A DNA stretch of 64,000 nucleotides from Macrostomum lignano (Eukaryota). Under the pieces are notes generated by a model. It was not told where the DNA came from, ran no database searches, and worked only from the letters and a program-made list of their open reading frames with translations. The translations under genes were made by a program, and so were the position numbers. The DNA lies in assembly GCA_002269645.1 (NCBI GenBank), contig NIVC01001342.1, forward strand, positions 186,001 to 250,000. The letters are read 5' to 3'. Shown here piece by piece: positions 1-60,540 of this stretch; the stretch's first letter is position 1, and the number at the start of each line of letters is the position of its first letter.

Positions 1-2842
1 GCGGGGCTCGGTGACCGTCGCGCCGGACGAACACGAACGGGCAGGCATCGAGTGCGGCGGGCCAGGCGGTCGGGCGGCAGCCGTGATGCGCCGTGGGTGT
101 CGGCCGGAACGCCTGGACTGCGTCGCGGAGCCGAACGAGAAACTGGTCGTGGCCTTCGGTTGCCGGGCCGGGCTGCAGGCACTCGCCGGGCACGCAGAGG
201 GGCGCTCCGTAAACCAGCTCAGCCGACGATGCCGGCAGGTCCTCCTTGGGCGCCGTCCGGATGCCGAGCAGCACCCAGGGCAGCTCGCTGACCCAGGCCG
301 GTCCCGTCAGCCGCGCCCTGAGGGCGGCCTTCAGCTGCCGATGGAACCGCTCGACCAGCCCGTTCGCCTGCGGATGGAAGGCCGTAGTCCGGTGCAGCTG
401 CATGCCGAGCAGCCGGGAGACGTTGGACCAGAGCTGCGACGTGAACTGCGAGCCGCGGTCCGAGGTGAGGTCACCCGGCACGCCAAATCGGGCAACCCAG
501 TGGGCGATGAAGGCGGAGGCACAGGCTGCGGCGGAAGTGTCAGTCATCGGGATCGCCTCTGGCCACCTGGTGAATCGGTCAACGATCGTCAGCAGATGCG
601 TAAAGCCTTGAGACGACGGCAGCGGCCCCACCAAGTCGACATGCACGTGGGCGAAGCGCTGGTCTGGGACGCGAATGCTCTCTACCGGGGCGGTGACGTG
701 CCGATGCACCTTGGCCGTCTGGCAGGCTACGCAAGTGCGCGCCCACCGGATGACGTCCCGGTTCATGCCAGCCCACACGAATTTGGCGGCCACGAGGCGC
801 CGCGTGCTGCGGACTGACGGGTGGGCGAGGCCATGGATGGCGTCGAAGACGGCGCGGCGGAAATCCGGAGGCACCAGCGGGCGCGGCCGGCCGGTCGAGA
901 TGTCGCACAGCAGGGCGACGCCAGGGCTGAGCTGCAGCGGCTCGAGCTGAAGGCTAGCGTCCTCTTGGGCAGTCGGGTCTGCTGTCTGCGCCTGCGCCAT
1001 GGCCGCGAAGTCCACACCGGGTAGCAGCCGGGGCTGTACCGAGGCGATCGTGCAGCGGGACAGCGCGTCCGCCACCGGGTTGTCCTTGCCCGCCACGTGC
1101 TGGACATCGGTGGTGAACTCAGACACGTACGCCAGATGCCGCTGCTGTCGTGCTGACCACGGGTCCGACATCTTAGACATGGCCGCGACGAGTGGCTTGT
1201 GGTCCGTGAAGGCGGTGAAGGCGCGGCCCTCGAGCGCGTAGCGGAAATGCCGGACCGCCAGGTACAGGGCAAGCAGCTCACGGTCGAACGCGCTGTACTT
1301 CTGCTCAGGCGCTCGGAGCTGCCGGCTGAAGAAAGCGAGTGGCTGCCACGCGCCGCCCACCCGCTGCTCGAGCGCTGCGCCGACGGCGGTGTCCGAGGCG
1401 TCGACAGTGAGGGCGATGGGCGCGTCCGCCCGCGGGTGCGCCAACAGTGCGGCGAAAGCCAGTGCCCGCTTAGCTCCTTCGAAGGCGGCAGTCAGCTCGG
1501 GTGTCCACCTCACGAGCTTCTCCTTGCCAGCAGTGGCCGCATGGATGGGGCGCAGCAGCTGGGCGGCGCGCGGCACGAAGCGGTGGTAGAAATTCACCAT
1601 GCCGGCGAACTCCTGCAGGCCCTTGACGGTGGCTGGCGGTGCGAAACTGGCGATGGCGTCGACTTTGGCGGGCAGCGGCACGGCTCCCTGGGCGCTGATC
1701 CGGTGGCCGAGGAAGTCGATCTCACTGCGGCCGAACTCGCACTTCGCCGGGTTGATGATCAGACCGTTGTCCGCCAGGCGCTGGAACAGCGTGCGCAGGT
1801 GCTCCAGGTGCTGCTGCGGGCTGCGGCTGGCGACTAGGAAATCGTCAATGTAGGCGAAAACGAAGTCGAGATCCTGGCAGACGGAGTCCACCAACCGCTG
1901 GAAGGCCTGGGCGGCGTTCTTGAGCCCGAACGGCATTCACAGGAACTCGAAGAGGCCGAACGGGGTGATGACGGCGGTCTTGGGCACATCGGCCGCAGCC
2001 ACGGGCACTTGGTGGTAGCCGCGAACCAGGTCGATCTTGGAGAAGACCGAGCAGCCGGCCAGGCGAGCTGAAAAGTCCTGAATATGCGGCACCGGGTAGC
2101 GGTCGGGCACCGTGGCGTCGTTGAGCCGCCTGAAATCGCCGCAGGGACGCCAGCCACCCGAGGCCTTGGGCACCATGTGCAGCGGTGAGGACCACGGGCT
2201 GTTGGACCGGCGCACGATGCCGAGCTGCTCCAGGAGCCGGAACTCCTCCTTGGCCACCGCCAGCTTGTCCGGCGGCAGGCGGCGAGGGCGGGCGTGGACC
2301 GGCGGGCCCTGCGTCGGGATGTGGTGCTCCACCCCGTGCCGTGGCGCAGCCCGCTGGAAACTGGGCTCGGTGAGAGCGGGGAACTCGGCCAACAGCTGGC
2401 TGTACGGGTCCGCGGTGGCAGCCGCGGCGAGCTGCAGACCAGGCCCGATGCCGTCCAGCAGGTGCACGCTGGCGAGCGAGCAAGCGTCCAGGAGCCGCCG
2501 GTGCGGCAGGTCCACCAGCAGGCCGTGGTGGCGGAGGAAGTCCGCGCCGATCAGCGGGCGCGAGACTTCGGCCAAGACGAACGGCCAGGAGCAGCGCTTG
2601 ATGCCGAGGTCGAGCGTGAGCTGCCGGGAGCCGAAGGTGCGTATCAGGCTGCCATTGGCTGCGTAAAGCGGCGGGCCAGTGGACCGCAGGCGTGCATCGG
2701 TGCCAGTGACAGGGAAGATGCTGACCTCGGCGCCCGTGTCGACCAGAAAGCGCCGGCCCGTCAACACATCGGGAATGAGCAACAGGTTGCTGTTGTTGCC
2801 GGCCGCCGAGCTGTTCACTGACGGCCGGCCTGCCCGTTTCCC
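1..2842 (-). pseudogene. pol: Pol polyprotein (PR-RT-RH-IN), -1 frame relative to gag, with one in-frame TGA at 1937-1939
   Basis: Manual translation gives FGLFEFL*MPFGLKNAAQAFQR..YIDD. The same frame continues through RNase H and integrase to base 1 (FVFVRRDGHRAP). The 1936->1 part is absent from the ORF track because it has no stop inside the window. Confidence 0.92.
2781..2842 (-). promoter_or_regulatory. -1 programmed ribosomal frameshift signal (G GGA AAC + stem-loop/pseudoknot)
   Basis: Slippery heptamer GGGAAAC (2842-2836) in the gag frame, 6-nt spacer, then a 10-bp stem GCCGGCCGTC/GGCGGCCGGC. Loop AACAG can pair with downstream CTGTT. Confidence 0.8.
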
Positions 2843-3537
2843 TGGAAGCTGCAGGGTGCCTCGCAGCGATGGGCCTTCGCGCCGAACCGGCGATGATAAA
2901 AGCACAGCCCGCTGTCCTGACCGCGCTGTGGGGGCCGATGCTGCCGGGCCGGGCGGCTGCTCCTGCTGGCCGAAGCCACCGCCGGCTGGTCAGGCGGTGG
3001 GGAGGTCGCCACCGCTGGCTGCTGGACGGAGGCAGCGGTGAACTGCGGCCTGCTGGCCCACAGCCTGTCGGCGAGCTGCGCTGCTTGCCGAGGCTCCGCG
3101 AAGTCGGCGGTTGCCATGGCCATGCGCACGTCCGGCGGCAGCTGCTGGCGGAACAACTCTTCGAAGAGCAGGCACGGTGGGTGGTCTCCCAGCAGGGCGA
3201 GCATCTCATCCATGAGTTCTGAGGGCCGCCGATCACCGAGGCCGGTCATGTTGAGCAGGCGACTGGCTTTCTGCTGCCTCGTCAAGTCGAAGGTGCCTTT
3301 GAGACGTTGCTTCAGCGTCTCGTACTTGCCCTCTGCTGGGGGAGCCTCTAAAATGTCGAGGAGGCATTCAGCCGTTTGCTGGTCGAGCGCTGCCACCAAG
3401 TAGTTGTACTTGGTCGCATCTTGCGTGATTCCGCGCAGAGAAAACTGGGCTTTGGCTTGAATGAACCATGCGTGGGGTTGAGCTGCCCAAAACTTGGGCA
3501 GTTTGAGAGAGACAGCTGCCTCTGTGTTGGAAGCCAT
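2815..3537 (-). CDS. gag: Retrotransposon Gag (240 aa) with C-terminal Cys/His knuckle
   Basis: ATG at 3537. [21 protein letters not shown] and the [18 protein letters not shown] knuckle are typical of this Gypsy Gag type. Confidence 0.9.
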
Positions 3538-3549
3538 TGTAGGAAATAG

Positions 3550-3566
3550 CTATGTCAGGCTCACCA
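3550..3566 (-). promoter_or_regulatory. Primer-binding site
   Basis: TGGTGAGCCTGAC directly after the LTR and just upstream of the gag ATG. The priming tRNA was not determined. Confidence 0.7.
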
Positions 3567-3567
3567 A

Positions 3568-3827
3568 TTTAGCGCCTTGCGAAAACGAAGTAAGTTGCAA
3601 GCGAGAAAAGTGAAAGTTTATTTGCTTTACGCGGTGTGTATAAATAAGCACGCGATCACATGGGAGGTGCGCCAAAAAGGTGGCACGATTGAAGGCCAAC
3701 CCCCCCCCCCCCCGACTTAGCATACTGACTGTCTGCCCGAGTACACCCACCCCCCAGCCTGGCGGGCAGGGGGTTTCAGTGCAGATGTACTCGCAATCGC
3801 TGGCTGCGTGCTGATTGGGCCGCCACA
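3568..3827 (-). repeat. 5' LTR (~260 bp)
   Basis: The minus strand begins TGTGGCGGCC at 3827, contains AATAAA (~3618-3623), and ends GGCGCTAAA (imperfect inverted terminus) one base before the TGG of the PBS. The partner LTR is outside the window. Confidence 0.75.
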
Positions 3828-4194
3828 ATATTTAATAATAGTCATTCCTCAATAAATTGTCTTATCACACGCAACCGACTTTTTATTTTAGTTAACAAAC
3901 ATTAAATATTAAAACATTTTAGGAATGAAAAGATAAAGTAAAAATGTTATTAATATGCAGAAAATATGAATGTATATAGTTCATAAAATTATCAAATAAA
4001 ATTAAGTTGTTAAAGAATCAATAAAATGGAACTAAGGATGGGGTGTACAATTAAGAAGGAATTAATTTAATACACCCACGGCCCCTGTCTGGATGGAATA
4101 AATTAATAAATCATAAATCATCCAATTAAACGAATAAGTCATCCACTAAATTATGCAGTTCGGAAACTAAAACACTCTTCTTATCCAATGTTCA

Positions 4195-6000
4195 ATTCGT
4201 ATATAACATGCATCATATTTCTAGGAAATATTCCGGAATTCGGAGACGGGACGGGAGCTCTGACTGGTTGACCTGGGGTGACGCAGCTTCCCAACAGGTT
4301 GCATGGCTGCAGGCGGGCGCTCCTGACGAAGGGGTGCACAACTGCATTTCTTACCAGAAGCCAAATTCGAAACAAATTCTGGTTCCCATATTTTCGTTTT
4401 AATTCAGTTGAGCTGTCTTGTAATTTCAGCCATGTGACGATGTGTGGCCAAAAAGTAACGAGAGTTGCTGTTAAATTTTAAAATTTGAGCTTTTACTAAA
4501 ATTAATCGACGTCTCTTGAAGCTCGGCTTCTCAGTTTTTATAGGAAGCATTATTGTGTCGAAGTGTTTTGGTTTGCATACGAGAGAATTTTTTATTATTT
4601 TTCATTATAGCTGTCACGCCGCTGTGCCACAAAATCAGCAACCAGCATCTAATAAACACGAAGTTTTTGGTGAAACTCAGCAAGAAGCCATCGGAATGCC
4701 TCCAGCTGCTTCGTGAGGTGTATACGAGTACTTATAGAGATGATGCTACGTCTCTGGCGATTGTGCATGAGTGGCACCAGCGATTCCGGGATGGGCGGGA
4801 GAGCGTCAAAGACGGTGCCGAAGTTCTTCACTGACGATCAGAAACAGCTGCGATTGGACATCGAGACATCGAGACAGTTTTGGTCCAAAAGACGGTCGCA
4901 GAGTTGAGCCACCCACCTTATTCACCGGATATGACGACGTGTGATTTCCGACTCTTTCTTAAGGTGAACCAGGTCCTCAAAGGATACAGATTCGAAGCCT
5001 TGGACGCCATCAAGGAGATTGTGACAGGTCTTAAAGGATCCAGATTTGAAGCCTTGGGCGCCATCAAGGAGATTGTGACAGGGGTGCTGGGAGGCGTCAT
5101 AAAGGAGGTCTCCCAGGGCTGCTTCAGGAGCTGGCACCAGCGATTAAGGCGATGTGTTGAAAGTGGCAGCAAATTTCTTTGAAGGCTGCAGTTGACTGAA
5201 TTTGCATTTTTTTGTTCTGGAAGTTTTTGTAGCAGAATTTTCGTTACTTTTTGAAAACACCTCGTACATATAGGTAGCCGTCATAATCAAAATTTTTTAC
5301 TTTACGCTGTTGATACCAGTGAGTGCCAGTTAGTTTAACATTCTGTACATTTGGGAGGCTTGGCAAGGCTGCACAGAGCTTATGGAAAAAATCAACCTTC
5401 TGGCAGAATTATGGAGAATTTCAGCGATGTCCGGAGGGCTGGCGACAATTGCTTCTTGTTTGAGAATGAGCGCAAAAAAGTTAGCCCGCGCTCTTGACTT
5501 TCGTGTGCCTGCGTTGCTTCGCCGTTCTATAGCGAATATCAGGGGAAACAATGGCAATTGGCATTCCTACTGTCAGTAGTCTCTTTTTACAGAGATTTTT
5601 TATACGACGCTACTATGGCTCTGGAATTACCTTCTGTTATCAGTGTGAGAGCCAAATAACCAAGGCTGGTGGATTCGAATAACTTTACCTGATGACGCAA
5701 TCACGAGATGTTTGCTTTCAATCCGTTTATTTGGTGTGCGCAATCTCAGAGATGTTCACTTCCAGAGAATATAAAGGGAGTGTTCCAGGTAAGAGCTTCG
5801 ATTACGATTAATTAAAACTGGTTTCAGGATTCTCAATTTAGGGCGAACTGATAGCTCGATCTGATGGGGATCTGTTATCCTTTGTTAGGGTTTGATGGAT
5901 CAATTTGTTCTATCCAAGTGGTTAGCTACAGCTCATCATGAGATGCTGAATGAGTCAGTGGAATCAGCATCAGACCCATGGGATATGGAATAACAGAGAT
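4195..6000. repeat. Dispersed ~1 kb unit found downstream of the minus-strand cluster genes (partial copies ~15740-16130, ~23680-23860, ~30560-30780, ~41055-41695)
   Basis: Shared blocks: GCTCTGACTGGTTGACCTGGGG (4256/41120), GGGAGGCTTGGCAAGGCTGC (5352/41468), CGTGTGCCTGCGTTGCT (5501/23768/41618), CTACTATGGCTCTGGAAT (5610/15741/30570). Confidence 0.8.
4436..5266 (+). mobile_element. Internally deleted, degenerate Tc1/mariner element
   Basis: Imperfect TIRs GACGATGTGTGGCCAAAAAGTAACGAGA and TTTCGTTACTTTTTGAAAACACCTCGTA. Transposase relics: N-terminal HTH (INTKFLVKLSK..HEWHQRFRDGRESVKD) and C-terminal HPPYSPDMTTCDF. The catalytic core is missing. Confidence 0.85.
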
Positions 6001-6052
6001 TTTAATATTCATGCATCTCTTTTAGTTATTAGAGAGATACTGAATTCAGCAT

Positions 6053-9000
6053 TTAGAGTAAATAATTACGGCCTCCGGGAAGTGGGCGTTGGGATTCTCT
6101 TCCACGGCCACTGTCGCCAGCGCCTCCGCCTCGTGGGACGGAGTGACTCCCTCCACGGCCACTGTCGCCAGCGCCTCCGCCTCGTGGGACGGAGTGACTC
6201 CCTCCACGGCCACTGTCGCCAGCGCCTCCGACTCGTGGGACGGAGTGACTCCCTCCACGGCCACTGCCGCCAGCGCCTACGCTTTCTAGGATGGAGTGAC
6301 TCCCTCCACGGCCTCTGCCGCCAGCGCCTCCGCCTCGTTGGTCGAAGTGACTCCCTCCACGGCCTCTGCCGCCAGCGCCTCCGCCTCGTGGGACGGAGTG
6401 ACTCCCTCTGGCGCCAGCGCCTCTGCCTCGTGGGACGGAGTGACTCCCTCCACGGCCTCTGCCGCCAGCGCCTACGCTTTGTAGGATGGAGTGACTCCCT
6501 CCACGGCCTCTGCCGCCAGCGCCTCCGCCTCGTGGGACGGAGTGACTCCCTCTGGCGCCAGCGCCTCTGCCTCGTGGGACGGAGTGACTCCCTCCACGGC
6601 CTCTGCCGCCAGCGCCTACGCTTTGTAGGATGGAGTGACTCCCTCCACGGCCTCTGCCGCCAGCGCCTACGCTTTGTAGGATGGAGTGACTCCCTCCACG
6701 GCCTCTGCCGCCAGCGCCTCCGCCTCGTGGGACGGAGTGACTCCCTCTGGCGCCAGCGCCTCTGCCTCGTGGGACGGAGTGACTCCCTCCACGGCCTCTG
6801 CCGCCAGCGCCTACGCTTTGTAGGATGGAGTGACTCCCTCCACGGCCTCTGCCGCCAGCGCCTACGCTTTGTAGGATGGAGTGACTCCCTCCACGGCCTC
6901 TGCCGCCAGCGCCTACGCTTTGTAGGATGGAGTGACTCCCTCCACGGCCTCTGCCGCCAGCGCCTCCGCCTCGTTGGTCGAAGTGACTCCCTCCACGGCC
7001 TCTGCCGCCAGCGCCTCCGCCTCGTGGGACGGAGTGACTCCCTCTGGCGCCAGCGCCTCTGCCTCGTGGGACGGAGTGACTCCCTCCACGGCCTCTGCCG
7101 CCAGCGCCTACGCTTTGTAGGATGGAGTGACTCCCTCCACGGCCTCTGCCGCCAGCGCCTACGCTTTGTAGGATGGAGTGACTCCCTCCACGGCCTCTGC
7201 CGCCAGCGCCTACGCTTTGTAGGATGGAGTGACTCCCTCCACGGCCTCTGCCGCCAGCGCCTCCGCCTCGTGGGTCAAATTGACTTCCTCCACGGCCTCT
7301 GCCGCCAGCGCCTCCGCCTCGTGGGACGGAGTGACTCCCTCCACGGCCACTGCCGCCAGCGCCTACGCTTTCTAGGATGGAGTGACTCCCTCCACGGCCT
7401 CTGCCGCCAGCGCCTCCGCCTCGTTGGTCGAAGTGACTCCCTCCACGGCCTCTGCCGCCAGCGCCTCCGCCTCGTGGGTCAAAGTGACTCCCTCCACGGC
7501 CTCTGCCGCCAGCGCCTCCGCCTCGTGGGTCGAAGTGACTCCCTCCACGGCCTCTGCCGCCAGCGCCTCCGCCTCGTTGGTCGAAGTGACTCCCTCCACG
7601 GCCGCTGCCGCCAGCGCCTCCGCCTCGTGGGACGGAGTGACTCCCTCCACGGCCTCTGCCGCCAGCGCCTCCGCCTCGTGGGACGGAGTGACTCCCTCTG
7701 GCGCCAGCGCCTCCGCCTCGTGGGTCGAAGTGACTCCCTCCACGGCCTCTGCCGCCAGCGCCTACGCTTTGTAGGACGGAGTGACTCCCTCCACGGCCTC
7801 TGCCACCAGCGCCTCCGCCTCGTGGGTCAAAGTGACTTTCTCCACGGCCTCTGCCGCCAGCGCCTCCGCCTCGTGGGTCGAAGTGACTCCCTCCACGGCC
7901 TCTGCCGCCAGCGCCTCCGCCTCGTGGGTCAAAGTGACTCCCTCCACGGCCTCTGCCGCCAGCGCCTCCGCCTCGTTGGTCAAAGTGACTCCCTCCACGG
8001 CCTCTGCCGCCAGCGCCTCCGCCTCGTGGGTCGAAATGACTCCCTTCAAGGTCACTTTCGCCAGCGTCTTCGCCTCGTAGGATGGAGTGACTCCCTCCAC
8101 GGCGCCTGCGGCCAGCGCCTCCGCCTGGTGAGCCGTTGGGATTTCTTCCATCGCTATTCTCATTTTCCCGGTGCAGTACTAGGCGGGTCTCTTCAACGAA
8201 CTCGGTCGCTTTGTGCGCCAGTTCGTAGACACTCTTCGGAGCTTCAGTCGCAGTAAGCAATTCGTTCACGCTTCGCTCAAGTTCGTCAATATTAACTTGC
8301 AGCCTGTGCTTCTCCTCATTCACTGAACTGACCCATAGGATGATCCACGCTCCCTCTTCTGTTAGGATATTAAATTCTCTTCGTACAAAATAGTCGATTA
8401 ATTTCTGGTCCATATTGACGGTCGATTCAAAATTGTTTTCAAAATATTCTGTCACTTTTTCAATTGTGAGCTCGCTTGGATTTCGATTATAATGTTTTAA
8501 TTGGTCTCTTGGCTTAATAAAAGCACCAGTATCAGCATCTTGTCTTCTTTTGTAAGCGAAAGGAAAATATCGTGGAAGCCTAATTTTTTTAGCTGAATAA
8601 ATGAAATTTTTCCAAGCGTGGTCCAGGGCCCTGTGCGAGTTCTCCAGTGTCTGCTTGAGGAACTTCTTCTCTTGGTGGCGATCGGCTATGAGATGGTTCC
8701 GAGTGGCCGAGAGCAGTGCTTGACGTGGATACGGGTTCAGATCGAACTCCTCTTTCACCTTCTGGCAAATGTCCCGGAACTTAACTTCCGCTTCATTTAC
8801 TGCCTTTTCGTAGCTGTCCTGCATCGCTAGATCGAATTCCTCATCTGAACTCTGTAATTTTTTGTACAGCAACCTTTTCTTGATGAAGAAGGACGTTGAG
8901 CTTTTCCGCAGGTTCAGCAGCCGAGCAACCAGCTCATACTGATCCCTGTGGTGAAGTTTAGGATCGTTCCTCAGGCCCTGAAGAAACTTCAAAACTTGCT

Positions 9001-11578
9001 GGCCAGCATCTTTGCACTTCAGCCTGAGACACTCGAGTAGACCATCGCGTTTGGCTTCAGATTGAGTCTCAGGATGCTCCAGCTTGCTCATGATGGAGTC
9101 GGCAATCAGCTCGCGTCTGTGCGGCAGTTTCGAATCAAGCAGCTCGAACTTCTCCTTTGCAGCATCGAACTGCTCTAACTCCAGATGCAGAACTCCTTGC
9201 TGCTCAATCGACAACTGATGCGGATAATTTGTTGTGGCAGCAAGTAAGTCCTCAATCAGTTTCTTCCGCTGTTCACGAAGTTTAGCAATAACAGCAACTG
9301 CAGGAAGACTTCCGTTATCGATCTGTGCTATAAATTTAGCTAACATATTTTCATCTGAAGCTGAAAGCAGATCCTCAAGTTCATCAATTTTAAGCTCAGC
9401 ATTCTGATATTGCTGACGGAGTTTTCCTTTAGCAGCAGTCGCCCATTTCGGACACTGGTTTAGCGCAGCCGAGACGGAAGTAGCGCTGAACTTGCCGTTG
9501 AGTTGTTTTATAAATCTTTTCAACTGCACTTGCTTAGGATTTGACAGCAGATATCTGAGCTCGTCCTCCGTAAAAGTGTCACTCTCTGGATATTCCCGAT
9601 ATAACTTGAACATTGCTGCAGTCGCCCAGCTGTCCCGCTGACTTTCTAGCGCAGTCCGGACGGAATCAGCCGGGAATTTGGCATCCACAGCTCGCAGAAA
9701 TTCAAGGAACAGCTTTGAATTGTTAAGCAGATCACTGAGCCGCGCAAATGAAAGACTAATATTTGGCTGCGCTTTGATTTCACTGCAGCATTCTCTCACG
9801 GCGGCAGCAGAGTTCCTTTCATCGATGAAGGAAAGAATAAATCTTGCATCATCGTTGTCGCTCTGGGCTAGCTTTGCTTTCAATTTATTTTTCTGATACT
9901 CACTGAGACAACTGTGCCAATTGGGAGGCTCATGTCCAGCGTACTCATTCAGCGCCCATGCGATCCACTGCGCACCTTCAGCTAGGCGACCATTAATTGC
10001 CAGGAAGTAGCCCTTCTCTGCCACAACGTGTGCTTTATGGGCTTCCCTGCTGGGTCTTAGGGAGAGAGAATCGTAGCGCTGGCAGATCCATTTGATGTGA
10101 TCATATTTTGATTTGCGCTCTTGGCCTTTATCTAAGTCTCTTTGATTCTGATCCAAATCAATGAGCGATTTGGCCACCCAAATGTTGTTGTCGAGATCAG
10201 CTTTTTTAAAGTGTTTTCGAGCTTCCTTGATATTTCTTTCTTGCTTCAACAAGTAAAGTGCCATTTGATGGTGCAAGTCGGGGCTTTCATACCATTTGTC
10301 AGAGCCACTCTGTTGTAGAAGCTCTGACGCGAGCCGAAACACCTTTGCTGAAATCTCTACTGTTTTCATTCTATCCTCCCCTTTCAATTTTTTGCACAGT
10401 TTTCTGCACACACTCAAAACAATCACGAGCACGCAGAGGCATTTTGGGGCTGATGAGTCATCCTGCTGCTCGTTTCTAAGATCCTCATAGGCGTCCGCTA
10501 TCAAGTCCTTGGCTTTTGGACCGTCAGAATTCAGAGTTGCCTCAGCATAGCTGGCAAGAAGCAAAGGCAGAGTGTCCCTGTGACTCTCTCTGCAAATCTG
10601 TTCGGCTTTTTCCCACAACTCCAGCTCTTCTTTTTCGGCGGCGCATCTGTTGTCTCTGCTCCTGCGAATTCGAGACTTTGTGACGGCGAGTCCAAACAGC
10701 CCGTAAAAATTGCTTGAATCCTTTTCAGATGCTTCGGTGAAATACTCTTCAGCCTCAGTCAGTTTCCCGAAGCCGCAGCGCAGCAGAATCCAGCCCACCG
10801 AGCTGAGCTGCCGAGATGCCGAGGAATCATCTGAGGAATCATCATCATCTGCTGGATACCACAGACTCTCCAACTCTTCCACATCTCTTTGCCAATCCTT
10901 GGGGAAGCCGTCGCAGGACTGAAGAGATCGCAGCTTCAGCCGCGCTGTATTGATGAGGTACTTTGCGCTCACCCGATCTGGGGAACCCTCGAGCTGCTCA
11001 GCTTCACCAATAAGCTCCAGAGCTTGAGGCAGATCCGCCATATCAGGATGCGTGTGCAGACACGACAGAGCAACCAGGTACACCGTCTCGAGCCACGGCT
11101 CACTTTGTCGTTTCCATTCGAATTTCTCAATCAGGTCTTTGACGTCTTCAACTTCACTGATGTCGGGGAGCCGCTTAAAATGGCGCTCCATACCTACTGG
11201 ACTCAGCTGGTGCTCGACGCCTCTGACGATCTCGACTTCGAACCAGCGGCCAAGGTTCGAGTTGAGCTTCAGAGAATGCTCTGTGTCTTCGGGAAGCAAC
11301 TCGGTGCCATCAGTCTTCTTCAGCTTGAATGAAAGATCCGTCAAAGTCGCTCCGTCCGGAACTTTAAAATTACCGTCCGTCTCTATCATATTGATGGTGA
11401 CCTTTTTCTGCCAGATGCTGTCTCTCAAGTTTCTCAGATGCCCCTGCTGGATCACCTGATTATTGCCGAGCTCCGGGCAGTTTCCAGCCAATGCAATTCG
11501 CTCACCGGCTGCAGCGCTGCAGTTGAAGCTGATTGAAACTCCGACTGTCTCTGCGTTTTCGGTTCCCATGTCGGTCAT
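6053..11578 (-). CDS. Gene A: intronless 1841-aa protein; CBM20-like domain + IFIT-like TPR region + 3x helical repeat + putative HEPN-like domain + RGG-rich tail
   Basis: Uninterrupted 5.5-kb ORF from ATG 11578. CBM20-like GERIALAGNCPELGN..IWQKKV. IFIT-like motifs GWILLRCG, VFRLAS, LHHQMAL. ENSHRALD..YFPF..NEEKHR. The C-terminal ~650 aa are GGSHxxPRGGGAGGRGR repeats. Confidence 0.85.
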   Translation of the reverse strand: MTDMGTENAETVGVSISFNCSAAAGERIALAGNCPELGNNQVIQQGHLRNLRDSIWQKKVTINMIETDGNFKVPDGATLTDLSFKLKKTDGTELLPEDTEHSLKLNSNLGRWFEVEIVRGVEHQLSPVGMERHFKRLPDISEVEDVKDLIEKFEWKRQSEPWLETVYLVALSCLHTHPDMADLPQALELIGEAEQLEGSPDRVSAKYLINTARLKLRSLQSCDGFPKDWQRDVEELESLWYPADDDDSSDDSSASRQLSSVGWILLRCGFGKLTEAEEYFTEASEKDSSNFYGLFGLAVTKSRIRRSRDNRCAAEKEELELWEKAEQICRESHRDTLPLLLASYAEATLNSDGPKAKDLIADAYEDLRNEQQDDSSAPKCLCVLVIVLSVCRKLCKKLKGEDRMKTVEISAKVFRLASELLQQSGSDKWYESPDLHHQMALYLLKQERNIKEARKHFKKADLDNNIWVAKSLIDLDQNQRDLDKGQERKSKYDHIKWICQRYDSLSLRPSREAHKAHVVAEKGYFLAINGRLAEGAQWIAWALNEYAGHEPPNWHSCLSEYQKNKLKAKLAQSDNDDARFILSFIDERNSAAAVRECCSEIKAQPNISLSFARLSDLLNNSKLFLEFLRAVDAKFPADSVRTALESQRDSWATAAMFKLYREYPESDTFTEDELRYLLSNPKQVQLKRFIKQLNGKFSATSVSAALNQCPKWATAAKGKLRQQYQNAELKIDELEDLLSASDENMLAKFIAQIDNGSLPAVAVIAKLREQRKKLIEDLLAATTNYPHQLSIEQQGVLHLELEQFDAAKEKFELLDSKLPHRRELIADSIMSKLEHPETQSEAKRDGLLECLRLKCKDAGQQVLKFLQGLRNDPKLHHRDQYELVARLLNLRKSSTSFFIKKRLLYKKLQSSDEEFDLAMQDSYEKAVNEAEVKFRDICQKVKEEFDLNPYPRQALLSATRNHLIADRHQEKKFLKQTLENSHRALDHAWKNFIYSAKKIRLPRYFPFAYKRRQDADTGAFIKPRDQLKHYNRNPSELTIEKVTEYFENNFESTVNMDQKLIDYFVRREFNILTEEGAWIILWVSSVNEEKHRLQVNIDELERSVNELLTATEAPKSVYELAHKATEFVEETRLVLHRENENSDGRNPNGSPGGGAGRRRRGGSHSILRGEDAGESDLEGSHFDPRGGGAGGRGRGGSHFDQRGGGAGGRGRGGSHFDPRGGGAGGRGRGGSHFDPRGGGAGGRGRGESHFDPRGGGAGGRGRGGSHSVLQSVGAGGRGRGGSHFDPRGGGAGARGSHSVPRGGGAGGRGRGGSHSVPRGGGAGGSGRGGSHFDQRGGGAGGRGRGGSHFDPRGGGAGGRGRGGSHFDPRGGGAGGRGRGGSHFDQRGGGAGGRGRGGSHSILESVGAGGSGRGGSHSVPRGGGAGGRGRGGSQFDPRGGGAGGRGRGGSHSILQSVGAGGRGRGGSHSILQSVGAGGRGRGGSHSILQSVGAGGRGRGGSHSVPRGRGAGARGSHSVPRGGGAGGRGRGGSHFDQRGGGAGGRGRGGSHSILQSVGAGGRGRGGSHSILQSVGAGGRGRGGSHSILQSVGAGGRGRGGSHSVPRGRGAGARGSHSVPRGGGAGGRGRGGSHSILQSVGAGGRGRGGSHSILQSVGAGGRGRGGSHSVPRGRGAGARGSHSVPRGGGAGGRGRGGSHSILQSVGAGGRGRGGSHSVPRGRGAGARGSHSVPRGGGAGGRGRGGSHFDQRGGGAGGRGRGGSHSILESVGAGGSGRGGSHSVPRVGGAGDSGRGGSHSVPRGGGAGDSGRGGSHSVPRGGGAGDSGRGRESQRPLPGGRNYLL
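6099..8135. repeat. Coding minisatellite, 51-bp and 42-bp units (~40 copies), encoding the RGG tail of gene A
   Basis: Unit CCACGGCCTCTGCCGCCAGCGCCTCCGCCTCGTGGGACGGAGTGACTCCCT and a 42-bp variant. Both lengths are multiples of 3. Confidence 0.95.
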
Positions 11579-11764
11579 GTCGACAGTGACGATTCCGACT
11601 GCGTGCTGCGTTTTAGTCCAGCTCAGATTGAATCCGAGCTTCTCTGCTCTCCTGGGGCGGCTCGGGTGAGCGGCTGCTCAGAGTCCCTGCTGAGAGAAGA
11701 GTGCCGAGTGAGCAGCCAATTAGCGCTGAGCTGAGCTGAAAGAGCAAATGAGTTCTCACAGCAA

Positions 11765-11940
11765 GTGAATCTCCATATCACAGTGAGTGAATCTCCATAT
11801 CACAGTGAGTGAATCTCCATATCACAGTGAGTGAATCTCCATATCACAGTGAGTGAATCTCCGTATCACAGTGAGTGAATCTCCATATCACAGTGAGTGA
11901 ATCTCCATATCACAGTGAGTGAATCTCCGTATCACAGTGA
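11765..11940. repeat. 22-bp tandem repeat (~8 copies) just upstream of gene A
   Basis: (GTGAATCTCCATATCACAGTGA)n. Confidence 0.95.
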
Positions 11941-12574
11941 ATGAATAACCGGGTCATTCTCATCCCCTTTCTTTCCATTGGGGATTAAGCCAACCAGATC
12001 CCCTGATGAAACCTGGGTTCTCAACCAAACACTGCCAGAGTTGGCTGTTGCCAGCACACAACACTTACGCAGAAAATGCAGACGTAAAAGATTCTGTTCA
12101 GATTGAGGCGCAGCTGTCTGAGTCGGTCGCTCGCAAGCAGTGGGCTGGTCTGTCCAATCCTAGTTGATAAACAGAGTGAGTGAGTTAAATAGCGTCGCTT
12201 GACTGAGCAAATTTTCTCTCGCGCCAGAGACTCGGAGTTCCGGACAGAAAGATATACAGAGGGGAGACCCCTTGCGCGTACAACAGGCTTAGGAGAGGCC
12301 GTGAGTCTCTCATTGTTCTCGGGTAGCTGCGTTTTCTCTGCTGAGTGCGTGCATTGGCTGTGCCGAAGTTTCAGCTCGCTAAAAAACAATGGCACGGCTC
12401 GGCAGATGGAGAAAAACTCCGCGTTATAAGGCACTATAATTTGTGTTGCTGTCCTGATGACCAACTGCAACAGCTACCGTGAGAAACTCTTCATTCGGTG
12501 TCGAAATATAGGATAGGCCAACCAGACACTTCAAACCAGTCCCAATCTGCAGGTTAAGACCGGTGTAAATGTAG

Positions 12575-13670
<1,096 letters not shown>

Positions 13671-15540: not shown

Positions 15541-16309
15541 CAGACCTTGTGACCCTGAGCGGGCCGGATTGCTATTGTGAAGTTTCAAAAGGCCGGATAG
15601 AAAGACTTCGTGGGCCGCATCACAGCCCTGGTCTAATATATGAGATTTTTGACGCTACAACTCAAATAGGGGCTCCTTCCCTCATCACGGTTAAGTGAAC
15701 TATTTTATTTTTGGGGTGTTCCTAGTCTTCTAGACTTCTACTACTATGGCTCTGGAATGAGCTTCTGTTATCAGTGGGAGAGCCAAATAACCAAGGCTGG
15801 TGAATTCCACGAATATTTCCTGATGACGCAATCACGAGATGTTTGCTTTCAATCCGTTTACTTGATATGCGCAATCTCAGAGATGTTCACTGCCAGAGAG
15901 TATAAAGGGGTGTTCCAGGTAAGAGCTTCGATTAAGATTAATTAAAACTGGTTTCAGGATTCTCATGTTAGAGCGAACTGATATCTCGATCTGATGTATG
16001 GTGGGATCTGTTATCCTTTGTTAGGGTTGGATGGATCAGTTTGTTCTATCCAAGTGGTTAGCTGCATCTCATCACGGGATGCTGAATGAGTCAGTGGAAT
16101 CAGCATCAGACTCATGGGATATTGAATAACGCAATGGGGTCAGCATCACCATTACCACTGTGCCAGCATCAGTATTATATACGAGATCAAGAAATGTACT
16201 TCATGAGCACTAATTTTTTGCCATCTATAGAAATTCGGTTCAAAAAGCCCGCCATCTTCCTTCCGCTTATTTCCAAAATTCCCTTTTTTCCGGGACGAAG
16301 GTTTAGCAA

Positions 16310-16910
16310 TAAACAGTGGCACTGATGGGATAACAGAAGCAATAAACAGTTTCATGATGGGATAACAGAAGCAATAAACAGTTTCATGATGGGATAACAG
16401 AAGCAATAAACAGTGGCACTGATGGGATAACAGAAGCAATAAACAGTGGCACTGATGGGATAACAGAAGCAATAAACAGTGGCGCTGATGGGATAACAGA
16501 AGCAATAAACAGTGGCACTGATGGGATAACAGAAGCAATAAACAGTGGCACTGATGGGATAACAGAAGCAATAAACTGTGGCACTGATGGGATAACAGAA
16601 GCAATAAACAGTGGCACTGATGGGATAACAGAAGCAATAAACAGTGGCGCTGATGTGATAACAGAAGCAATAAACAGTTTCATGATGGGATAACAGAAGC
16701 AATAAACAGTTTCATGATGGGATAACAGAAGCAATAAACTGTGCCGCTAATGGGATAACAGAAGCAATAAACAGTTTCATGATGGGATAACAGAAGCAAT
16801 AAACAGTGGCACTGATGGGATGACAGAAGCAATAAACAGTGGCGCTGATGGGATAACAGAAGCAATAAACAATTTCATGATGGGATAACAGAAGCAATAA
16901 ACAGTGTCGC
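16310..16910. repeat. 33/32-bp minisatellite downstream of gene B (paralog 31240-31450)
   Basis: (AAACAGTGGCACTGATGGGATAACAGAAGCAAT)n with 32-bp TTTCATGATG variants. Confidence 0.95.
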
Positions 16911-16967: not shown

Positions 16968-19670
16968 TTAATTCCATCGGTAAAAATTTGGCACGACTAC
17001 GTCACCAGGTTCCATCAGCGATTCTTTGAAGTTTTCGTTGTTTTTTCCAGGCTCCAGGCCGAGCTGCCGCCAGGCAGCCATCATGACGACGAACCAGCAG
17101 GCGGCCACCTCCATGTGGCTTTTCCAGCACCAGTACCAGTCGCTGTGCATCACGTCGCACTCCTTGCTGACCAGCGAGGCCTCCATGCGGCCGCGGACGA
17201 TGGCGGCTGACTGGCGGAAAAGGCAGTGGTACCAGTCAAGAGTGGCATCGTTACCATCGATACTGATATTTATATTCGTGTCTTTGACCCAATGCGCCAG
17301 CTCAATGAGTGCATTCTTGTACTCTGGATCTGAGAAATTCTCAATGAGGAATTTGGACAAATTATTTTCTCCGGCAACCCTGAAGAGCTCGTACACGCTG
17401 CAGTGCTCAAGCGTTGGAATGTTTCTTTGAATTACCGGTACTTGTCTCGCGTGATACTTTCGGTTGAGACGCTGGCACACCGCCTCTCTGTTGTTCCGGA
17501 GACCTTCGCTTTCTCGTAGTCTGCAGTATTCAATGGCGCTTCGCGCGGGGGTTTCCTGCGGATTCTGCGGATTCAGCGGAATCGCTCCCTCATCTGCGAG
17601 GGCGTCTCCCCAGATGTCGTGATATTTATTAGTTCCGCTGGTCCTATTAGTGTTAGCGTTGTAAGACCCGTCTAAATTTATAATAGGCACCAGACACTGA
17701 GCGTATGTATCCTTGACGTTATCAAAGGTAACCTCTGGCTGATGAGGTAAATGCACTATCAGCGTGCGGTGCATCAGCGTGAGTATGTTGTCTCGCAGGA
17801 TCCGGCAAGTATCTGTCACAGGCAGTGAAATGCACACCCAGCATACTCCATCAAATGTGCACTGGAGGTCAAAGGTGTCGTGGTCTACTTGATCTGCAAT
17901 TTCGCGACGGAGTGTTGGCTTGAAAGTATTCCCATATTTAATCAGTCCGTTCTCGTTGAACAGCGCGAGTTGAAGGGTCAGAGCCTCAGGGTTGCCAACT
18001 TGGCCTTCCGCCTCAATCTGTGGCGGAAGCTTCCAAGTATTGTAGGGGCACTCCACCATCTTGAGAGTGACTTTTTTCACCCACGTTGAAAATCTCTCAC
18101 CGCTCATAATGCAATCCATTTCGTTGTCGGCCAGTTGGTCGAGGTTTCCCAGCGTGACGCAGTTGCCCAGGATGACAAGTTTTTCACTCGGCTTGGTCTT
18201 GTACTCCACTCGAATTTGAATGTTCACAGTCTTTTGCTTATCTGCAGAAGATACACGAACTCCTCTGTCACCCCAGTTGGTTTCCAGAGTGAACTGAGGC
18301 TTTCCGCCGTTTGCATTGAGTCGCACACTTCTAATGACATCGCAGCTTCTTTCATTGTTGGGTCTCAAGCGGTTTCTGTGGTCGTCGAACACAGCGAGAC
18401 CAAATGATAGATTGTCACCATTCGGAAGAGTTAGACGGCCATCAGGATGTTTCCGCATTAAGACATTGAGTTGTTGCTTCTCCCAAATGCTGTTGCGTTT
18501 GTACGTCATCAAATTTTTTCGGTCAGCTCGAACGTTTTTCCCGACAACAGCAATCATCTCACCAAAACTTGTGCTATAGTGAGTTCTTACAGCGATCTCG
18601 GCGTTTACAAATAGTTTTATATTCTGGTCATCGAAAGCGGATTCTATAGTAACACGATTCCCATCGTCCACGGTGAGCTGCACAGAACGTTGAGGAACAT
18701 TTTCTGGTTGCCACTGATCCTCGACATATTGGTAGAATCCGAATGCAAGATCAACTACATTCTTGGCTTGATCCAAAACAGACACTTGGTTGTTAGTGGA
18801 GTGAATTAACATAGTTATTTTTACATATTTCTGTCCAATACGCGTATTTCTATTAACTGTCAATTCCTGTTCCGTAGCAATCTCACGGCAGTTTCCCTTC
18901 ACAGCGATTCGTTCAACATCTTGAGGAATGGAGTTCGTTTGAAAAGTGACGTCACGTGTTGTGAACAAGTACAGAACATAGTTGTTAGGATTGACATCCA
19001 GGAGATAGGATTTTATACCCTTCCAAGTGAGAGTGACAGGTTGCCGGAAATCCTCAAAATTCCACTCTTCATTGTCATCAATGCGAGAACCAATGCTGAA
19101 TTTAAGATTGGTTTCTTCAACAGCAGAGGGCTCCGAACTATAAAGGGGTACTTTCCAATCTCCAGCTCTATTTTGAAACATTTCAATGCTGACTGCTTCT
19201 GTAGTCTGATGCTGGTCAAACCTCTCAAATGTCAGCTCAGCGCAGTTTCCCCGGACAGCAATCTGCTGATTATTTGCGGGAGCACGATATAGGAAGGTGA
19301 CTTTCACTGTCTCTGTTGGGAATACGCGATAGCCTGAGCCATCTGGGCTGAACCAAATCAGAAACCTGTTCTGTCTTGTCGCTTTTAAAACCACGCTGAG
19401 TGGCTGATCATGCTGCAGGTTCCAATCATCATTAGGTCCAGCGCGAACAAGTATTCTCACTGACAGATCTTGTCCGGAAACTTTGAGGCTTCCAGCATCA
19501 TCTCTCACCATTTTGATCTTGAGTTCTGTCTGCCAGACATTGTTTCCCAAGTCAGTAGCCAGTCGCTTGACATTCCGAAGCTCATTACAGTTTCCTTGAA
19601 CTCCAATTTGCGTTTCATCTGCTGCATTGAATTCAGTCCGGAAGACAACAGTAACATTAACTGTTGTCAT
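16968..19670 (-). CDS. Gene B: intronless 900-aa protein with five tandem CBM20-like domains and an unrecognised ~280-aa C-terminal domain
   Basis: ORF from ATG 19670. Five ~115-aa units begin with a VxVT/IxV strand then GNC/VVG-xxL (e.g. AVRTHYSTSFGEMIAVVG; IRVEYKTKPSEKLVILGNCVTLGN), matching the CBM20 N-terminal pattern. Confidence 0.85.
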   Translation of the reverse strand: MTTVNVTVVFRTEFNAADETQIGVQGNCNELRNVKRLATDLGNNVWQTELKIKMVRDDAGSLKVSGQDLSVRILVRAGPNDDWNLQHDQPLSVVLKATRQNRFLIWFSPDGSGYRVFPTETVKVTFLYRAPANNQQIAVRGNCAELTFERFDQHQTTEAVSIEMFQNRAGDWKVPLYSSEPSAVEETNLKFSIGSRIDDNEEWNFEDFRQPVTLTWKGIKSYLLDVNPNNYVLYLFTTRDVTFQTNSIPQDVERIAVKGNCREIATEQELTVNRNTRIGQKYVKITMLIHSTNNQVSVLDQAKNVVDLAFGFYQYVEDQWQPENVPQRSVQLTVDDGNRVTIESAFDDQNIKLFVNAEIAVRTHYSTSFGEMIAVVGKNVRADRKNLMTYKRNSIWEKQQLNVLMRKHPDGRLTLPNGDNLSFGLAVFDDHRNRLRPNNERSCDVIRSVRLNANGGKPQFTLETNWGDRGVRVSSADKQKTVNIQIRVEYKTKPSEKLVILGNCVTLGNLDQLADNEMDCIMSGERFSTWVKKVTLKMVECPYNTWKLPPQIEAEGQVGNPEALTLQLALFNENGLIKYGNTFKPTLRREIADQVDHDTFDLQCTFDGVCWVCISLPVTDTCRILRDNILTLMHRTLIVHLPHQPEVTFDNVKDTYAQCLVPIINLDGSYNANTNRTSGTNKYHDIWGDALADEGAIPLNPQNPQETPARSAIEYCRLRESEGLRNNREAVCQRLNRKYHARQVPVIQRNIPTLEHCSVYELFRVAGENNLSKFLIENFSDPEYKNALIELAHWVKDTNINISIDGNDATLDWYHCLFRQSAAIVRGRMEASLVSKECDVMHSDWYWCWKSHMEVAACWFVVMMAAWRQLGLEPGKNNENFKESLMEPGDVVVPNFYRWN

Positions 19671-21077: not shown

Positions 21078-21584
21078 CCTCGTCTCCATTCAGCAAGTGG
21101 AGTTAAAAATCCAAATCTAGCAATATAATTTACAACTAGACAGCGCTGATTGAGGGCCATCAATCATATTGGAAATGAAAGATTTTTCCGGGCTGCAGTT
21201 CTTCAGAGATCTTTCCTACTGATGCAGCGCGTCGTTGCCGTTCCCAGCCTCAGCCGCAGTGGCTGCAATTTCTGGTTACGCCAAAGGTTTGCGCAATCCA
21301 CGCATCTGCGCGTGCGACCCGCGCCTTGCCTGTACCAACTGCGTTCTCGAGAGCTTGGGATGCAGTGTGAAATGTAAAGTCATGGTTTCCGTGCACAACT
21401 TTCCCCTTGCTTAATTGTCAACATGGCGTGCTTTACGGTAGTAAGTACTACTAATAGCAAACTGCCGGTAGCAATCGCCTAGCAACCCAAATAGGCTTGC
21501 TGCCTGCAGCGCCTGGGGCCCCAAAAATGCTGGCAGATTTTTGTGTCAAGAGAGAGCGATATTTTGTGACAGAAAATGCCGTGT

Positions 21585-22290
21585 GTTGTGTCAGAGTATG
21601 CCATACTTGTGTCAGAGGGTGCCATACTTGTGTCAGAGAGTGCCATATTTTGTGCCAGAGGGTGCCATATTTCGTGTCAGAGGGTGCCATATTTGTGTCA
21701 GAGGGTGCCATACTTGCGTCAGAGGGTGCCATACTTGTGTCAGAGGGTGCCATACTTGTGTCAGAGGGTGCCATACTTGTGTCAGAGTATGCCATACTTG
21801 TGTCAGAGGGTGCCATACTTGTGTCAGAGTATGCCATACTTGTGTCAGAGGGTGCCATACTTGTGTCAGAGAGTGCCATATTTTGTGCCAGAGGGTGCCA
21901 TATTTCGTGTCAGAGGGTGCCATATTTGTGTCAGAGGGTGCCATACTTGCGTCAGAGGGTGCCATACTTGTGTCAGAGGGTGCCATACTTGTGTCAGAGG
22001 GTGCCATACTTGTGTCAGAGTATGCCATACTTGTGTCAGAGGTGCCATACTTGTGTCAGAGTATGCCATACTTGTGTCAGAGGGTGCCATACTTGTGTCA
22101 GAGAGTGCCATATTTTGTGCCAGAGGGTGCCATATTTCGTGTCAGAGGGTGCCATATTTGTGTCAGAGGGTGCCATACTTGTGTCAGAGGGTGCCATACT
22201 TGTGTCAGAGGGTGCCATACTTGTGTCAGAGGGTGCCATACTTGTGTCAGAGGGTGCCATACTTGTGTCAGAGGGTGCCATACTTGTGTA
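21585..22290. repeat. 21-bp minisatellite
   Basis: (GTCAGAGGGTGCCATACTTGT)n with 22-bp variants. Confidence 0.95.
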
Positions 22291-22397
22291 GTAGTCGTCT
22301 TTGAAGTCAGCTTTGGCTGGACAATTAAACTAAAGGAATTAAGGCAGCATAAGCCTGTCCGGCCAGAAAGCCAGGTGTGGAGCGAGCGAAGGCTATG

Positions 22398-25654: not shown

Positions 25655-26105
25655 CGCCTGGGCGGATGAAAATCTTTGTCCGAAAAAGTTGCTTCTGGCT
25701 GTCCCTGTTAGCGTCCGAGAGCCGGTGCTGGCATGCAGTGCCGCACAGCTTATTCCAGCTTGGAACCCAGCCGAAGTGAAACTACTTGAGCTCGACTGAC
25801 GCTGCTTGACCAACTGCTCAGTTCTGAATGCGCAGAGCTATTTAATCTCTTTTTTGATGCAAGAATTCTCTGTACACTGGCGTTCTGCATCTCTATTGAG
25901 TGCTCAATAAGGCACAAAGAGAGTACTTTAGACTCATATGAGTGTGCAAAACCTATGAGGGAGGAAAATTCTGTTTTGATTTTATCATTGTTGTCGCGTA
26001 GCTGAGTCTTCTCTGCTGAGTGCGCGCACTGGCTGTGCCGAAGTTTCAGCTTGATAATAAACAATGGCACGGCTCGGCACATGGAGAAAAACTGCAACGG
26101 CTACG

Positions 26106-60445: not shown

Positions 60446-60482
<37 letters not shown>

Positions 60483-60505: not shown

Positions 60506-60540
<35 letters not shown>

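Follow-up and report, generated by a model that had tools for sequence, protein, structure and literature searches.

This article concerns a stretch of 64,000 nucleotides from Macrostomum lignano (contig NIVC01001342.1, here called the window) and one gene within it, gene A, a complete intronless open reading frame (ORF) on the minus strand that encodes 1841 amino acids (aa). In our opinion gene A is probably, though by no means certainly, a derived, domain-accreted member of an undescribed family, in which an N-terminal part made of tetratricopeptide repeats (TPR) and homologous to IFIT proteins is joined to a family-specific C-terminal helical domain; its product would be a probable RNA-binding protein. 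An earlier sequence-only reading of this DNA had placed the ORF exactly where it is and had described it as an IFIT-related module embedded in a far larger multidomain invertebrate protein. That description stands, as IFITs are the best matches of the module among solved structures both by profile and by fold. The parts of gene A, and what each of them was defined by, are as follows.

6053..11578, minus strand: gene A, complete intronless ORF with an ATG start, 1841 aa, Macrostomum lignano
11231..11557, minus strand: N-terminal CBM20-like module (aa 8-116); sub-threshold Pfam match and BLASTP to modules of neighbouring genes
10664..11203, minus strand: IFIT-specific TPR part (aa ~126-305); profile against the PDB, hhalign
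9899..10663, minus strand: TPR / helical-repeat continuation (aa 306-560); within the IFIT-like fold match, no IFIT-specific sequence signal
9209..9781, minus strand: three internal ~55-aa helical repeats (aa ~600-790); pairwise repeat alignments
8159..9211, minus strand: family-specific conserved C-terminal region (aa 790-1140); jackhmmer, all family members
8159..8416, minus strand: terminal ~86-aa orphan module (aa 1055-1140); family alignments
6056..8158, minus strand: RGG/RG-rich low-complexity tail (aa 1141-1841); Tandem Repeats Finder (TRF), composition

Relationship of the TPR array to IFITs

A profile built from a seven-member family alignment of the TPR region (A1) was compared with 177,635 PDB sequences by hmmsearch. 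IFIT5 comes first (E 3.9e-7, profile 8-181 against IFIT5 14-189); at lower ranks are IFIT1 (2e-3 to 1e-2), LapB as the best TPR protein that is not an IFIT (9e-3, hence within the range of IFIT1) and the designed CTPRs (0.06-0.4). By sequence profile, IFITs appear to be the closest relatives of the family among families with solved structures. With hhalign, A1 scores 97.1% against IFIT5 plus IFIT1 (E 5.6e-11, 306 columns) and 13.5% (E 2e-3) against consensus TPR, which served as control. For the N-terminal part of A1 (gene A aa 120-319) the separation is sharper, with 96.9% (E 1.3e-10) against IFIT and 2.9% against consensus TPR. Judged by these comparisons, the first ~180 TPR residues of the family are homologous to the whole of IFIT subdomain I and continue into the beginning of subdomain II.

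The predicted structure points in the same direction. The AlphaFold2 (AF2) model of aa 120-560 (pLDDT 82.9, pTM 0.80, 20 helices) was searched with Foldseek against 350,542 PDB chains. The first 14 ranks (E 2.4e-7 to 1.5e-5) contain no structures other than IFIT1 and IFIT5; generic TPR structures, TTC7B and OGT among them, begin at 6.6e-5. TM-scores are 0.51-0.56 to IFIT5 (over ~460-500 columns) and 0.63, normalised to the target, to an N-terminal fragment of IFIT1. The expectation of an IFIT fold is thereby borne out, since it is the best structural match to this region in the PDB.

For pairwise comparison the human IFIT1 query was identical to PDB 5W5H, and the IFIT5 query was verified likewise. 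BLASTP of gene A against IFIT1 returns one collinear segment (A262-455 against 146-307; 25% identity, 30 bits, single-pair E 2e-4). The Smith-Waterman (SW) score of this pair is 89, while 1000 shuffles give 40.1 +/- 5.6 with a maximum of 68, and the reversed sequence gives 41; the similarity exceeds a composition effect. P0003 (PAA92423.1), in which Pfam TPR families are above cut-off, matches IFIT5 by BLASTP with 38.9 bits and E 7e-7 (residues 7-188 against 13-188). N-terminal SW z-scores against IFIT5 and IFIT1, respectively, are 12.5 and 5.6 for P0003, 8.0 and 10.1 for P0005, 5.8 and 1.6 for P0016, and 3.2 and 5.0 for gene A; against consensus TPR they are at most 1 for P0003, P0005 and P0016 (0.5 for P0003).

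CHFTW has been described as invariant in all IFITs; it sits in the loop that connects alpha1 with alpha2, two helices outside the TPRs (PMC11462223). P0003 has ELECHFTW, as IFIT5 does and at equal N-terminal offset, and P0030 (PAA75149.1) has LECHFTW; the hallmark segment reads 'LEELECHFTWLPED' in P0003, 'LDQLECHFTWKPDD' in P0030 and 'LLELECHFTWNLL' in IFIT5. At this position other members have CHFKW (P0005), CPFSW (P0016), SPFKW (P0011) and SHFQR (P0024). Within aa ~126-305, gene A retains a degenerate loop, RHFKR (aa 132-136), together with the motif GWILLR (aa 262-267) and R303, the equivalent of IFIT5 R186.

The sequence-only reading had aligned six motif pairs with IFIT1-type proteins by eye and had extended the similarity over aa 125-470. 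Independent alignments (HMM, hhalign, BLAST) reproduce three of the pairs, namely ERHF / RCHF, QALELIGEAEQL / EALKSLKEAENL and GWILLRCGFGKL... / GWALLKCGGKNY... (GWILLRCG.../GWALLKCG...). The three distal pairs are not robust, and all of them fall in aa ~320-560 of gene A, where nothing speaks for IFITs in particular. Both BLAST and hhalign contradict KVFRLAS / YVFRYAA: the former pairs KVFRLASELL with KALELLKKAL, the latter RYAAKF of the IFITs with the family-conserved SYAEAT. LHHQMAL / LHHQIGL is found by BLAST but is absent from hhalign and not conserved in the family, and ARKHFKKA / AIFHFESA is not reproduced by the alignments. Thus the IFIT-specific similarity holds for aa ~126-305 and is lost beyond aa ~320, where the distal part scores like consensus TPR. 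Taken alone, gene A aa 320-560 has an SW z of 5.4 against IFIT1 and merely 2.5 against IFIT5, and similarity over a whole IFIT (~470 aa, subdomains I-III) was not found for gene A.

The basic RNA pocket, whose conservation had been raised as a question, is kept in part. In the published structures the residues of the IFIT5 5'-triphosphate (5'-ppp)/cap pocket include E33, T37, Q41, K150, Y156, R186 and others, and W146 is the cap-stacking Trp of IFIT1. Seven members were compared, only where all alignments agree, that is up to residue ~190. The position of R186 is basic in six of the seven and Y156 is kept in four; K150 (as Arg) and W146 are kept in gene A and P0024 only. T37 and Q41 vary from member to member, and E33 lies within an insertion. 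Gene A and its relatives may or may not bind RNA 5' ends in the manner of IFITs.

Set side by side, vertebrate IFITs (IFIT5 and IFIT1; PDB 3ZGQ/4HOR, 5W5H/5UDI/6C6K) and gene A have in common an all-helical TPR array. The family has the non-TPR helix-loop CHFTW at its N-terminus (exact in P0003 and P0030, RHFKR in gene A) and a basic residue at the R186 position, and the helix-7 motif KGWALLKxG of IFITs corresponds to GWILLRCG in gene A. The coding sequence (CDS) of gene A has no introns, and vertebrate IFITs have nearly their whole CDS in one exon. The differences are equally plain. Specific similarity extends over ~180 residues only, at ~20-28% identity, and most of the 5'-ppp/cap pocket residues differ. 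Moreover, an IFIT is a TPR-only protein of ~480 aa (~50-55 kDa), whereas gene A has 1841 aa, with a CBM20-like domain in front and additional repeats, a C-terminal domain of a new kind and the RGG tail besides.

The family, its C-terminal domain and the sister copy

An exhaustive phmmer search of 1.84 billion representatives, for which aa 1-1140 of gene A served as query, gives 23 matches, and every named one is from Macrostomum lignano. Word-indexed searches, whose candidate filter was limiting, returned nothing or P0002 alone with this query and with A1, at E 1e-3 and at E 10. At least seven paralogue groups exist in this species. P0002/P0024 is 46% identical to gene A across the TPR and C-terminal regions; further members are P0003 and P0012/P0030 (PAA48280.1 / PAA75149.1), the last of which is the smallest in the family with 877 aa, and three have UniProt names (P0006, TPR_REGION; P0011, RRM; P0018/P0031, C3H1-type). 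The remaining relatives are single long intronless ORFs on long ENA metagenome-assembly contigs with a GC content of 35-39%. The family appears to be previously undescribed and to comprise M. lignano and a few lower-GC eukaryotes.

Two observations on relatives deserve a note. The 4203-aa protein P0027 (UniRef A0A1I8JIK7, 'AMP deaminase') joins a P0003-like member (aa ~960-1850) to AMP deaminase; this is probably a merged gene prediction and not a genuine fusion. Adjoining the ENA relative P0016, a 561-aa ORF (2730-4415 of locus L002) has a ZBED1 RNase-like helical domain (PF27039) and probably derives from a hAT-type transposase.

The C-terminal region (aa 790-1140) consists of helical repeats, then long helices and then the terminal module, and its AF2 model is all-helical and confident (pLDDT 87.8, pTM 0.88). 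In the terminal module R1067, E1068, W1078, W1082, N1087, K1090, H1091, H1122, E1126, F1127 and E1129 are invariant, which makes it a candidate active site. No family was found for the C-terminal domain in Pfam, NCBIfam or PADLOC with 18-19 members, and no match in PDB sequences by profile searches with alignments of the region. Library matches of single members (EAD11, Csm6_6H, MreC and others) are scattered and were rejected as chance. With the AF2 model, the best Foldseek E is 0.11 in the PDB and 0.17 in BFVD, and pattern scans with the trimmed module in viral, GTDB and JGI metagenome collections return only chance pattern matches and no relatives.

Between the TPR array and this domain stand the ~55-aa repeats, with the consensus 'L..F.....KF.A.SV..AL.....WATAA..KL...Y'. 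Gene A has three copies and paralogue P0024 about one. The tail that follows the C-terminal domain is what had been predicted for it, an RGG tail: its 701 aa are 39% G, 15% R and 13% S and contain 55 RGG and 99 RG, and TRF reports a 51-bp (17-aa) array of 40.7 copies at 6101-8130. Tails of this type are also found in P0001, where the length is ~516 aa, and in P0003, which carries a GRGGSEHF repeat tail. Gene A resembles the RGG/RG boxes of FUS, hnRNP and Scd6/LSM14-type proteins in its Gly/Arg-rich repeats with RGG triplets; unlike them, its tail is unusually long and is a strictly tandem 17-aa unit with His, Ser, Phe and Asp, and the copy number of the repeat differs between the two genomic copies of the gene. 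Other members carry other add-ons. P0011 has RRM_1 (Pfam 36.2 bits), and P0018/P0031 show a visible C-x7-C-x4-C-x3-H pattern; since Pfam zf-CCCH is silent on P0018 and P0031, the CCCH call depends on the UniProt name and this pattern.

The locus exists in a second copy, L003 (NIVC01000672.1 of assembly GCA_002269645.1), which aligns collinearly with the window, is 94-95% identical to it in DNA and may be either homeologous or allelic. Within aa 1-1140, 80 substitutions and a single 1-nt indel in an A-run are all that separates the two copies. The substitutions are concentrated between aa 301 and 400 and between aa 701 and 800. One change falls in the C-terminal module and one in the CBM20-like domain, and there is a single amino-acid difference in aa 1001-1140. 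The indel lies at window 9878 (gene A codon 568) and L003 9737, where a 1-nt deletion in the A-run of L003 splits the ORF; either an error in assembling the homopolymer or a genuine pseudogenising change could account for it. The GenBank model of the sister copy, PAA78669.1 (P0001), is 95% identical to gene A over aa 656-1140 and continues into an RGG tail, and it probably starts at the equivalent of aa 656 because of this indel. GenBank models of this genome are derived from an RNA-seq-guided transcriptome (PMC5730564), and hence we infer that the sister copy is transcribed. The same genome has ~5 introns per gene on average and many duplicated blocks that are at least 95% identical (PMC5730564), so that an intron-free CDS of 5.5 kb is atypical for it.

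An ATTAAA is found 50 nt past the stop codon of gene A. A 22-bp tandem repeat at 11756-11946 (8.7 copies, 96% matches), which also aligns in L003, lies 180-370 bp upstream of the start codon, inside the presumptive promoter or 5' region.

Weighing the readings

A number of observations weigh against the view that we favour. Phmmer with gene A against all PDB sequences retrieves no IFIT, and with P0003 alone it retrieves from the PDB only consensus-TPR designs, through one canonical repeat; P0030 matches IFIT5 at the motif only. CHFTW is degenerate in gene A, where, as in P0024, only H-F is kept. The IFIT-specific signal is restricted to ~180 residues (IFIT5 13-189), and the rest is like generic TPR, with hhalign values for the distal part of A1 of 3.9% against IFIT and 17% against consensus TPR. 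Across the family most positions of the IFIT5 triphosphate pocket (T37, Q41, K150, Y156) are unconserved. The C-terminal domain is without a known relative, and the idea that its terminal module is catalytic derives from the pattern of invariant polar residues alone. Finally, constraint on gene A would be weak because dN/dS against L003 (aa 1-1140) is ~0.66, a value obtained from merely 80 substitutions, and the L003 copy is frameshifted, possibly by a homopolymer error.

With these points in mind, the mode of action that we consider most likely can be outlined as follows. The family core, as in the 877-aa PAA75149.1, would be an N-terminal TPR array with the CHFTW loop plus a C-terminal helical domain that ends in the ~86-aa module with its invariant Arg, Glu, two Trp, Asn, Lys-His, His and Glu/Glu. 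To this core gene A would have added a CBM20-like beta module, taken from a pool common to two neighbour genes, a triplicated internal helical repeat and a 700-aa RGG repeat tail. The product would be a cytosolic RNA-binding protein in which the IFIT-like clamp and the RGG tail hold RNA, and the conserved C-terminal module would provide the output, as a catalytic site for the RNA held in this way or as a surface for interactions. RNA is the most likely ligand because RGG, RRM and CCCH-type add-ons occur on one core and because of the IFIT relationship.

Whether such a protein would serve immunity, as in the single-chain antiviral RNA sensor plus effector that the sequence-only reading proposed, is a separate matter, and here we are more cautious, as an immune role is something we infer. 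The family has expanded within one lineage while its domains were shuffled, it is found in few taxa, constraint is weak except in the conserved module, and the CDS has no introns. These features fit a conflict or surveillance gene, which is a fit and not a proof. Only tentatively would we go on to suggest that the family is a protostome branch of the IFIT lineage, a single-chain clamp with a novel effector module (R-E / W-W / N-x2-K-H / H-x3-E-x2-E), possibly a new RNA-acting enzyme, and with interchangeable RGG, RRM and CCCH add-ons, directed against viruses or transposons. If this is true, the RNA-clamp fold of IFITs is older than the interferon system and than vertebrates.

The main rival, which we regard as a serious if not a likely alternative, is a non-immune role: a housekeeping protein or a component of germline or stem-cell ribonucleoprotein (RNP) granules, in which the RGG tail targets RNA granules, the TPR array is a scaffold and the tie to IFITs is historical. 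A 700-aa RG/RGG tail is what one would expect of such a protein, since tails of this kind are typical substrates of arginine methylation and of Tudor binding. Paralogues with RRM and CCCH-type modules agree with this role as well, and so do the mostly unconserved pocket residues and the host, because flatworms are not known to have an interferon system. Other features are more usual in conflict genes than in core RNP components: the expansion into at least seven divergent paralogue groups with shuffled accessory domains, the very narrow taxonomic range, a relaxed dN/dS of 0.66 whose changes are clustered in the TPR and repeat regions, and a CDS that lacks introns although the genes of this genome have ~5 on average.

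It is unlikely, in our opinion, that the IFIT likeness is generic TPR similarity or convergence and that gene A encodes no more than a large TPR scaffold protein without kinship to IFITs. The caution is a fair one, as earlier invertebrate 'IFIT' candidates were shown to be generic TPR proteins (Liu et al. 2013, PMC3688568), single-sequence searches of our family miss IFITs, the distal half cannot be told apart from consensus TPR and Foldseek TM-scores are moderate (at most 0.56). Yet the match lies in the N-terminal part, which is non-canonical, and includes a non-TPR helix-loop where the eight residues ELECHFTW are identical at equal offset. By fold no other TPR structure ranks as high as the IFITs, and by profile none ranks as high as IFIT5. 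The question whether the TPR region is closer to IFITs or to generic TPR therefore has a divided answer: it is IFIT for the N-terminal part (96.9% against 2.9%) and generic TPR for the distal part.

The sequence-only reading had also called the C-terminal domain HEPN-like and a possible nuclease. The corresponding proposal, that this domain is a HEPN-type RNase and the protein an IFIT sensor with a HEPN effector, we consider quite unlikely. It draws on an invariant N-x3-H, which gene A reads as VNEEKH (V-N-E-E-K-H), located on a helix and spaced as in the RN-x3-H of HEPN/KEN RNases, and on the all-helical model. P0011 alone reads RNKAEH, a canonical Rx4H; the otherwise invariant Lys is missing there, and in our opinion this is one suggestive swap and not evidence. 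Gene A and nearly all other members lack the Arg that defines Rx4-6H, none of the 18-19 members matches a HEPN family in Pfam, NCBIfam or PADLOC, and neither the PDB sequence searches nor Foldseek with the aa 790-1140 model returned a HEPN entry. Hence we regard the domain as an orphan, and its membership in HEPN is unsupported.

That gene A is an untranscribed or decaying ORF, kept open by chance or by repeat structure, is very unlikely: tandem repeats of the window do create spurious long ORFs (such as one of 768 aa antisense to the tail), the L003 copy is frameshifted and the exact gene A protein is absent from the gene-position index, but 3.4 kb of non-repetitive ORF give confident AF2 models, paralogues are 46% identical and distant relatives occur in other organisms, and the sister copy has no stop codons save for one homopolymer indel and has a transcript-derived GenBank model.

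We return to the reading of gene A as a member of an IFIT-related, probably RNA-binding family and to how it compares with known systems. ZAP/ZC3HAV1 (CCCH fingers plus other domains) and SAMD9/9L (with a TPR region) are alike in fusing an RNA-recognition module to further domains in one chain, and CCCH-type fingers are shared by ZAP and paralogue P0018/P0031. No sequence or fold relationship to these proteins was detected (SAMD9 has a Foldseek E of 0.67 for the C-terminal model). TTC22 is grouped with IFITs in PANTHER PTHR10271 and is reported to be an IFIT-related TPR protein beyond the interferon system; it has no solved structure, and it could be the true closest relative. A literature search for a link between TTC22 and IFITs returned nothing relevant, and one for IFITs and flatworms found neither a link nor a mention of these Macrostomum gene IDs.

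Published surveys place the origin of IFITs in jawed vertebrates and reject the earlier invertebrate candidates (PMC3688568). In the papers searched IFITs are reported from vertebrates only (PMC3688568, PMC11462223), and a protostome protein that joins an N-terminal clamp of IFIT type to a conserved but uncharacterised domain would accordingly be new. We see the significance in two respects. IFITs are textbook interferon-stimulated antiviral proteins, and a flatworm family in which the first IFIT subdomain is retained together with the CHFTW loop would place IFIT among antiviral effectors older than interferon. Viperin and cGAS-STING are further effectors of that age. Mx has recently been added to them (PMC11789081). 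The second respect is the fused C-terminal domain, which with its confidently folded model, its strong conservation and its lack of a relative in the libraries searched is a candidate new functional domain, and the modules it is partnered with (RGG, RRM, CCCH) point to RNA. The M. lignano family would also be a tractable model for the function of an IFIT-type clamp without interferon, as RNA interference is established in this species. Transgenesis is established as well (PMC5730564).

The CBM20-like N-terminus, neighbouring genes and the rest of the window

Pfam finds nothing above cut-off in full-length gene A; its only, sub-threshold, matches are TPR_2 (aa 435-460) and CBM_20 (aa 14-70). 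The claim of a CBM20-like N-terminus is less strongly supported than that of the RGG tail. The gene A module itself scores 20.6 bits (E 4e-4), below the cut-off of 23.3, but BLASTP finds it homologous to repeated modules of neighbouring ORFs (E 1e-9 for neighbour C and 3e-7), and neighbour C passes the cut-off with 37.8 bits. These modules belong to two genes.

16968-19670, minus strand: CBM20-repeat neighbour gene, intronless, 900 aa
31862-33835, minus strand: CBM20-repeat neighbour gene (P0009), intronless, 657 aa, 77% identical to the former

Of the nine modules (gene A plus eight neighbour copies) four match CBM_20, and no other family recurs; a profile of the modules against PDB sequences did not reach a CBM20 structure. 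As compared with the CBM20 modules of laforin, STBD1 and glucoamylase, gene A matches the first two-thirds of the profile only, and the tryptophan of LGxW, which we take from the CBM20 consensus to be a conserved aromatic glycan-binding residue, is replaced (PELGNN in gene A, DELGNE in neighbour C). A CBM20 fold is plausible, but because of this replacement (LGNN) glycan binding is doubtful. Other family members begin directly at the CHFTW helix, and the module therefore seems to be a recent local accretion in gene A.

Both neighbour genes have 3-5 tandem CBM20-like modules followed by a conserved C-terminal domain of ~300 aa ('...WYWCWKSHMEVAACWF...'), for which no match was found in Pfam or the PDB. 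A third fragment of this C-terminal domain, 94.5% identical, lies at 31510-31674, adjoining the second neighbour gene.

The ankyrin-repeat genes at 24839-25813 and 42003-43454, both on the minus strand (Pfam Ank_2, E 1e-22 to 1e-28), resemble each other at the N-terminus ('MATAEQLSAALDADD...' and 'MATADQLRAALDADD...'); another lies at L003 18394-19866, adjoining the homeologous copy of gene A. Mobile elements are represented by a LINE-like reverse-transcriptase ORF at 21541-23451 on the plus strand (Pfam RVT_1, E 5.6e-11) and, by eye and with no Pfam match, by a short remnant at 4880-5182 on the plus strand, 'HPPYSPDMTTCDFRLF', which resembles the C-terminus of a mariner/Tc1-type transposase.

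The density of micro- and minisatellites is extreme, with 40 TRF rows of score at least 300 in 64 kb, for example at 12575-13670 (CTAA x274), 43778-45012, 46161-47160, 50245-51854 and 60448-61584; it fits the 15% simple and tandem repeats reported for M. lignano. Several long ORFs are by-products of these repeats and not genes, among them the 768-aa ORF antisense to the RGG tail (5950-8256, plus strand) and other ORFs of at least 200 aa, e.g. at 21541-22300, 27039-27947, 37412-38401 and 48244-49499. A 33-bp array at 16305-16906 is much longer in L003, where it occupies positions 1-2057.

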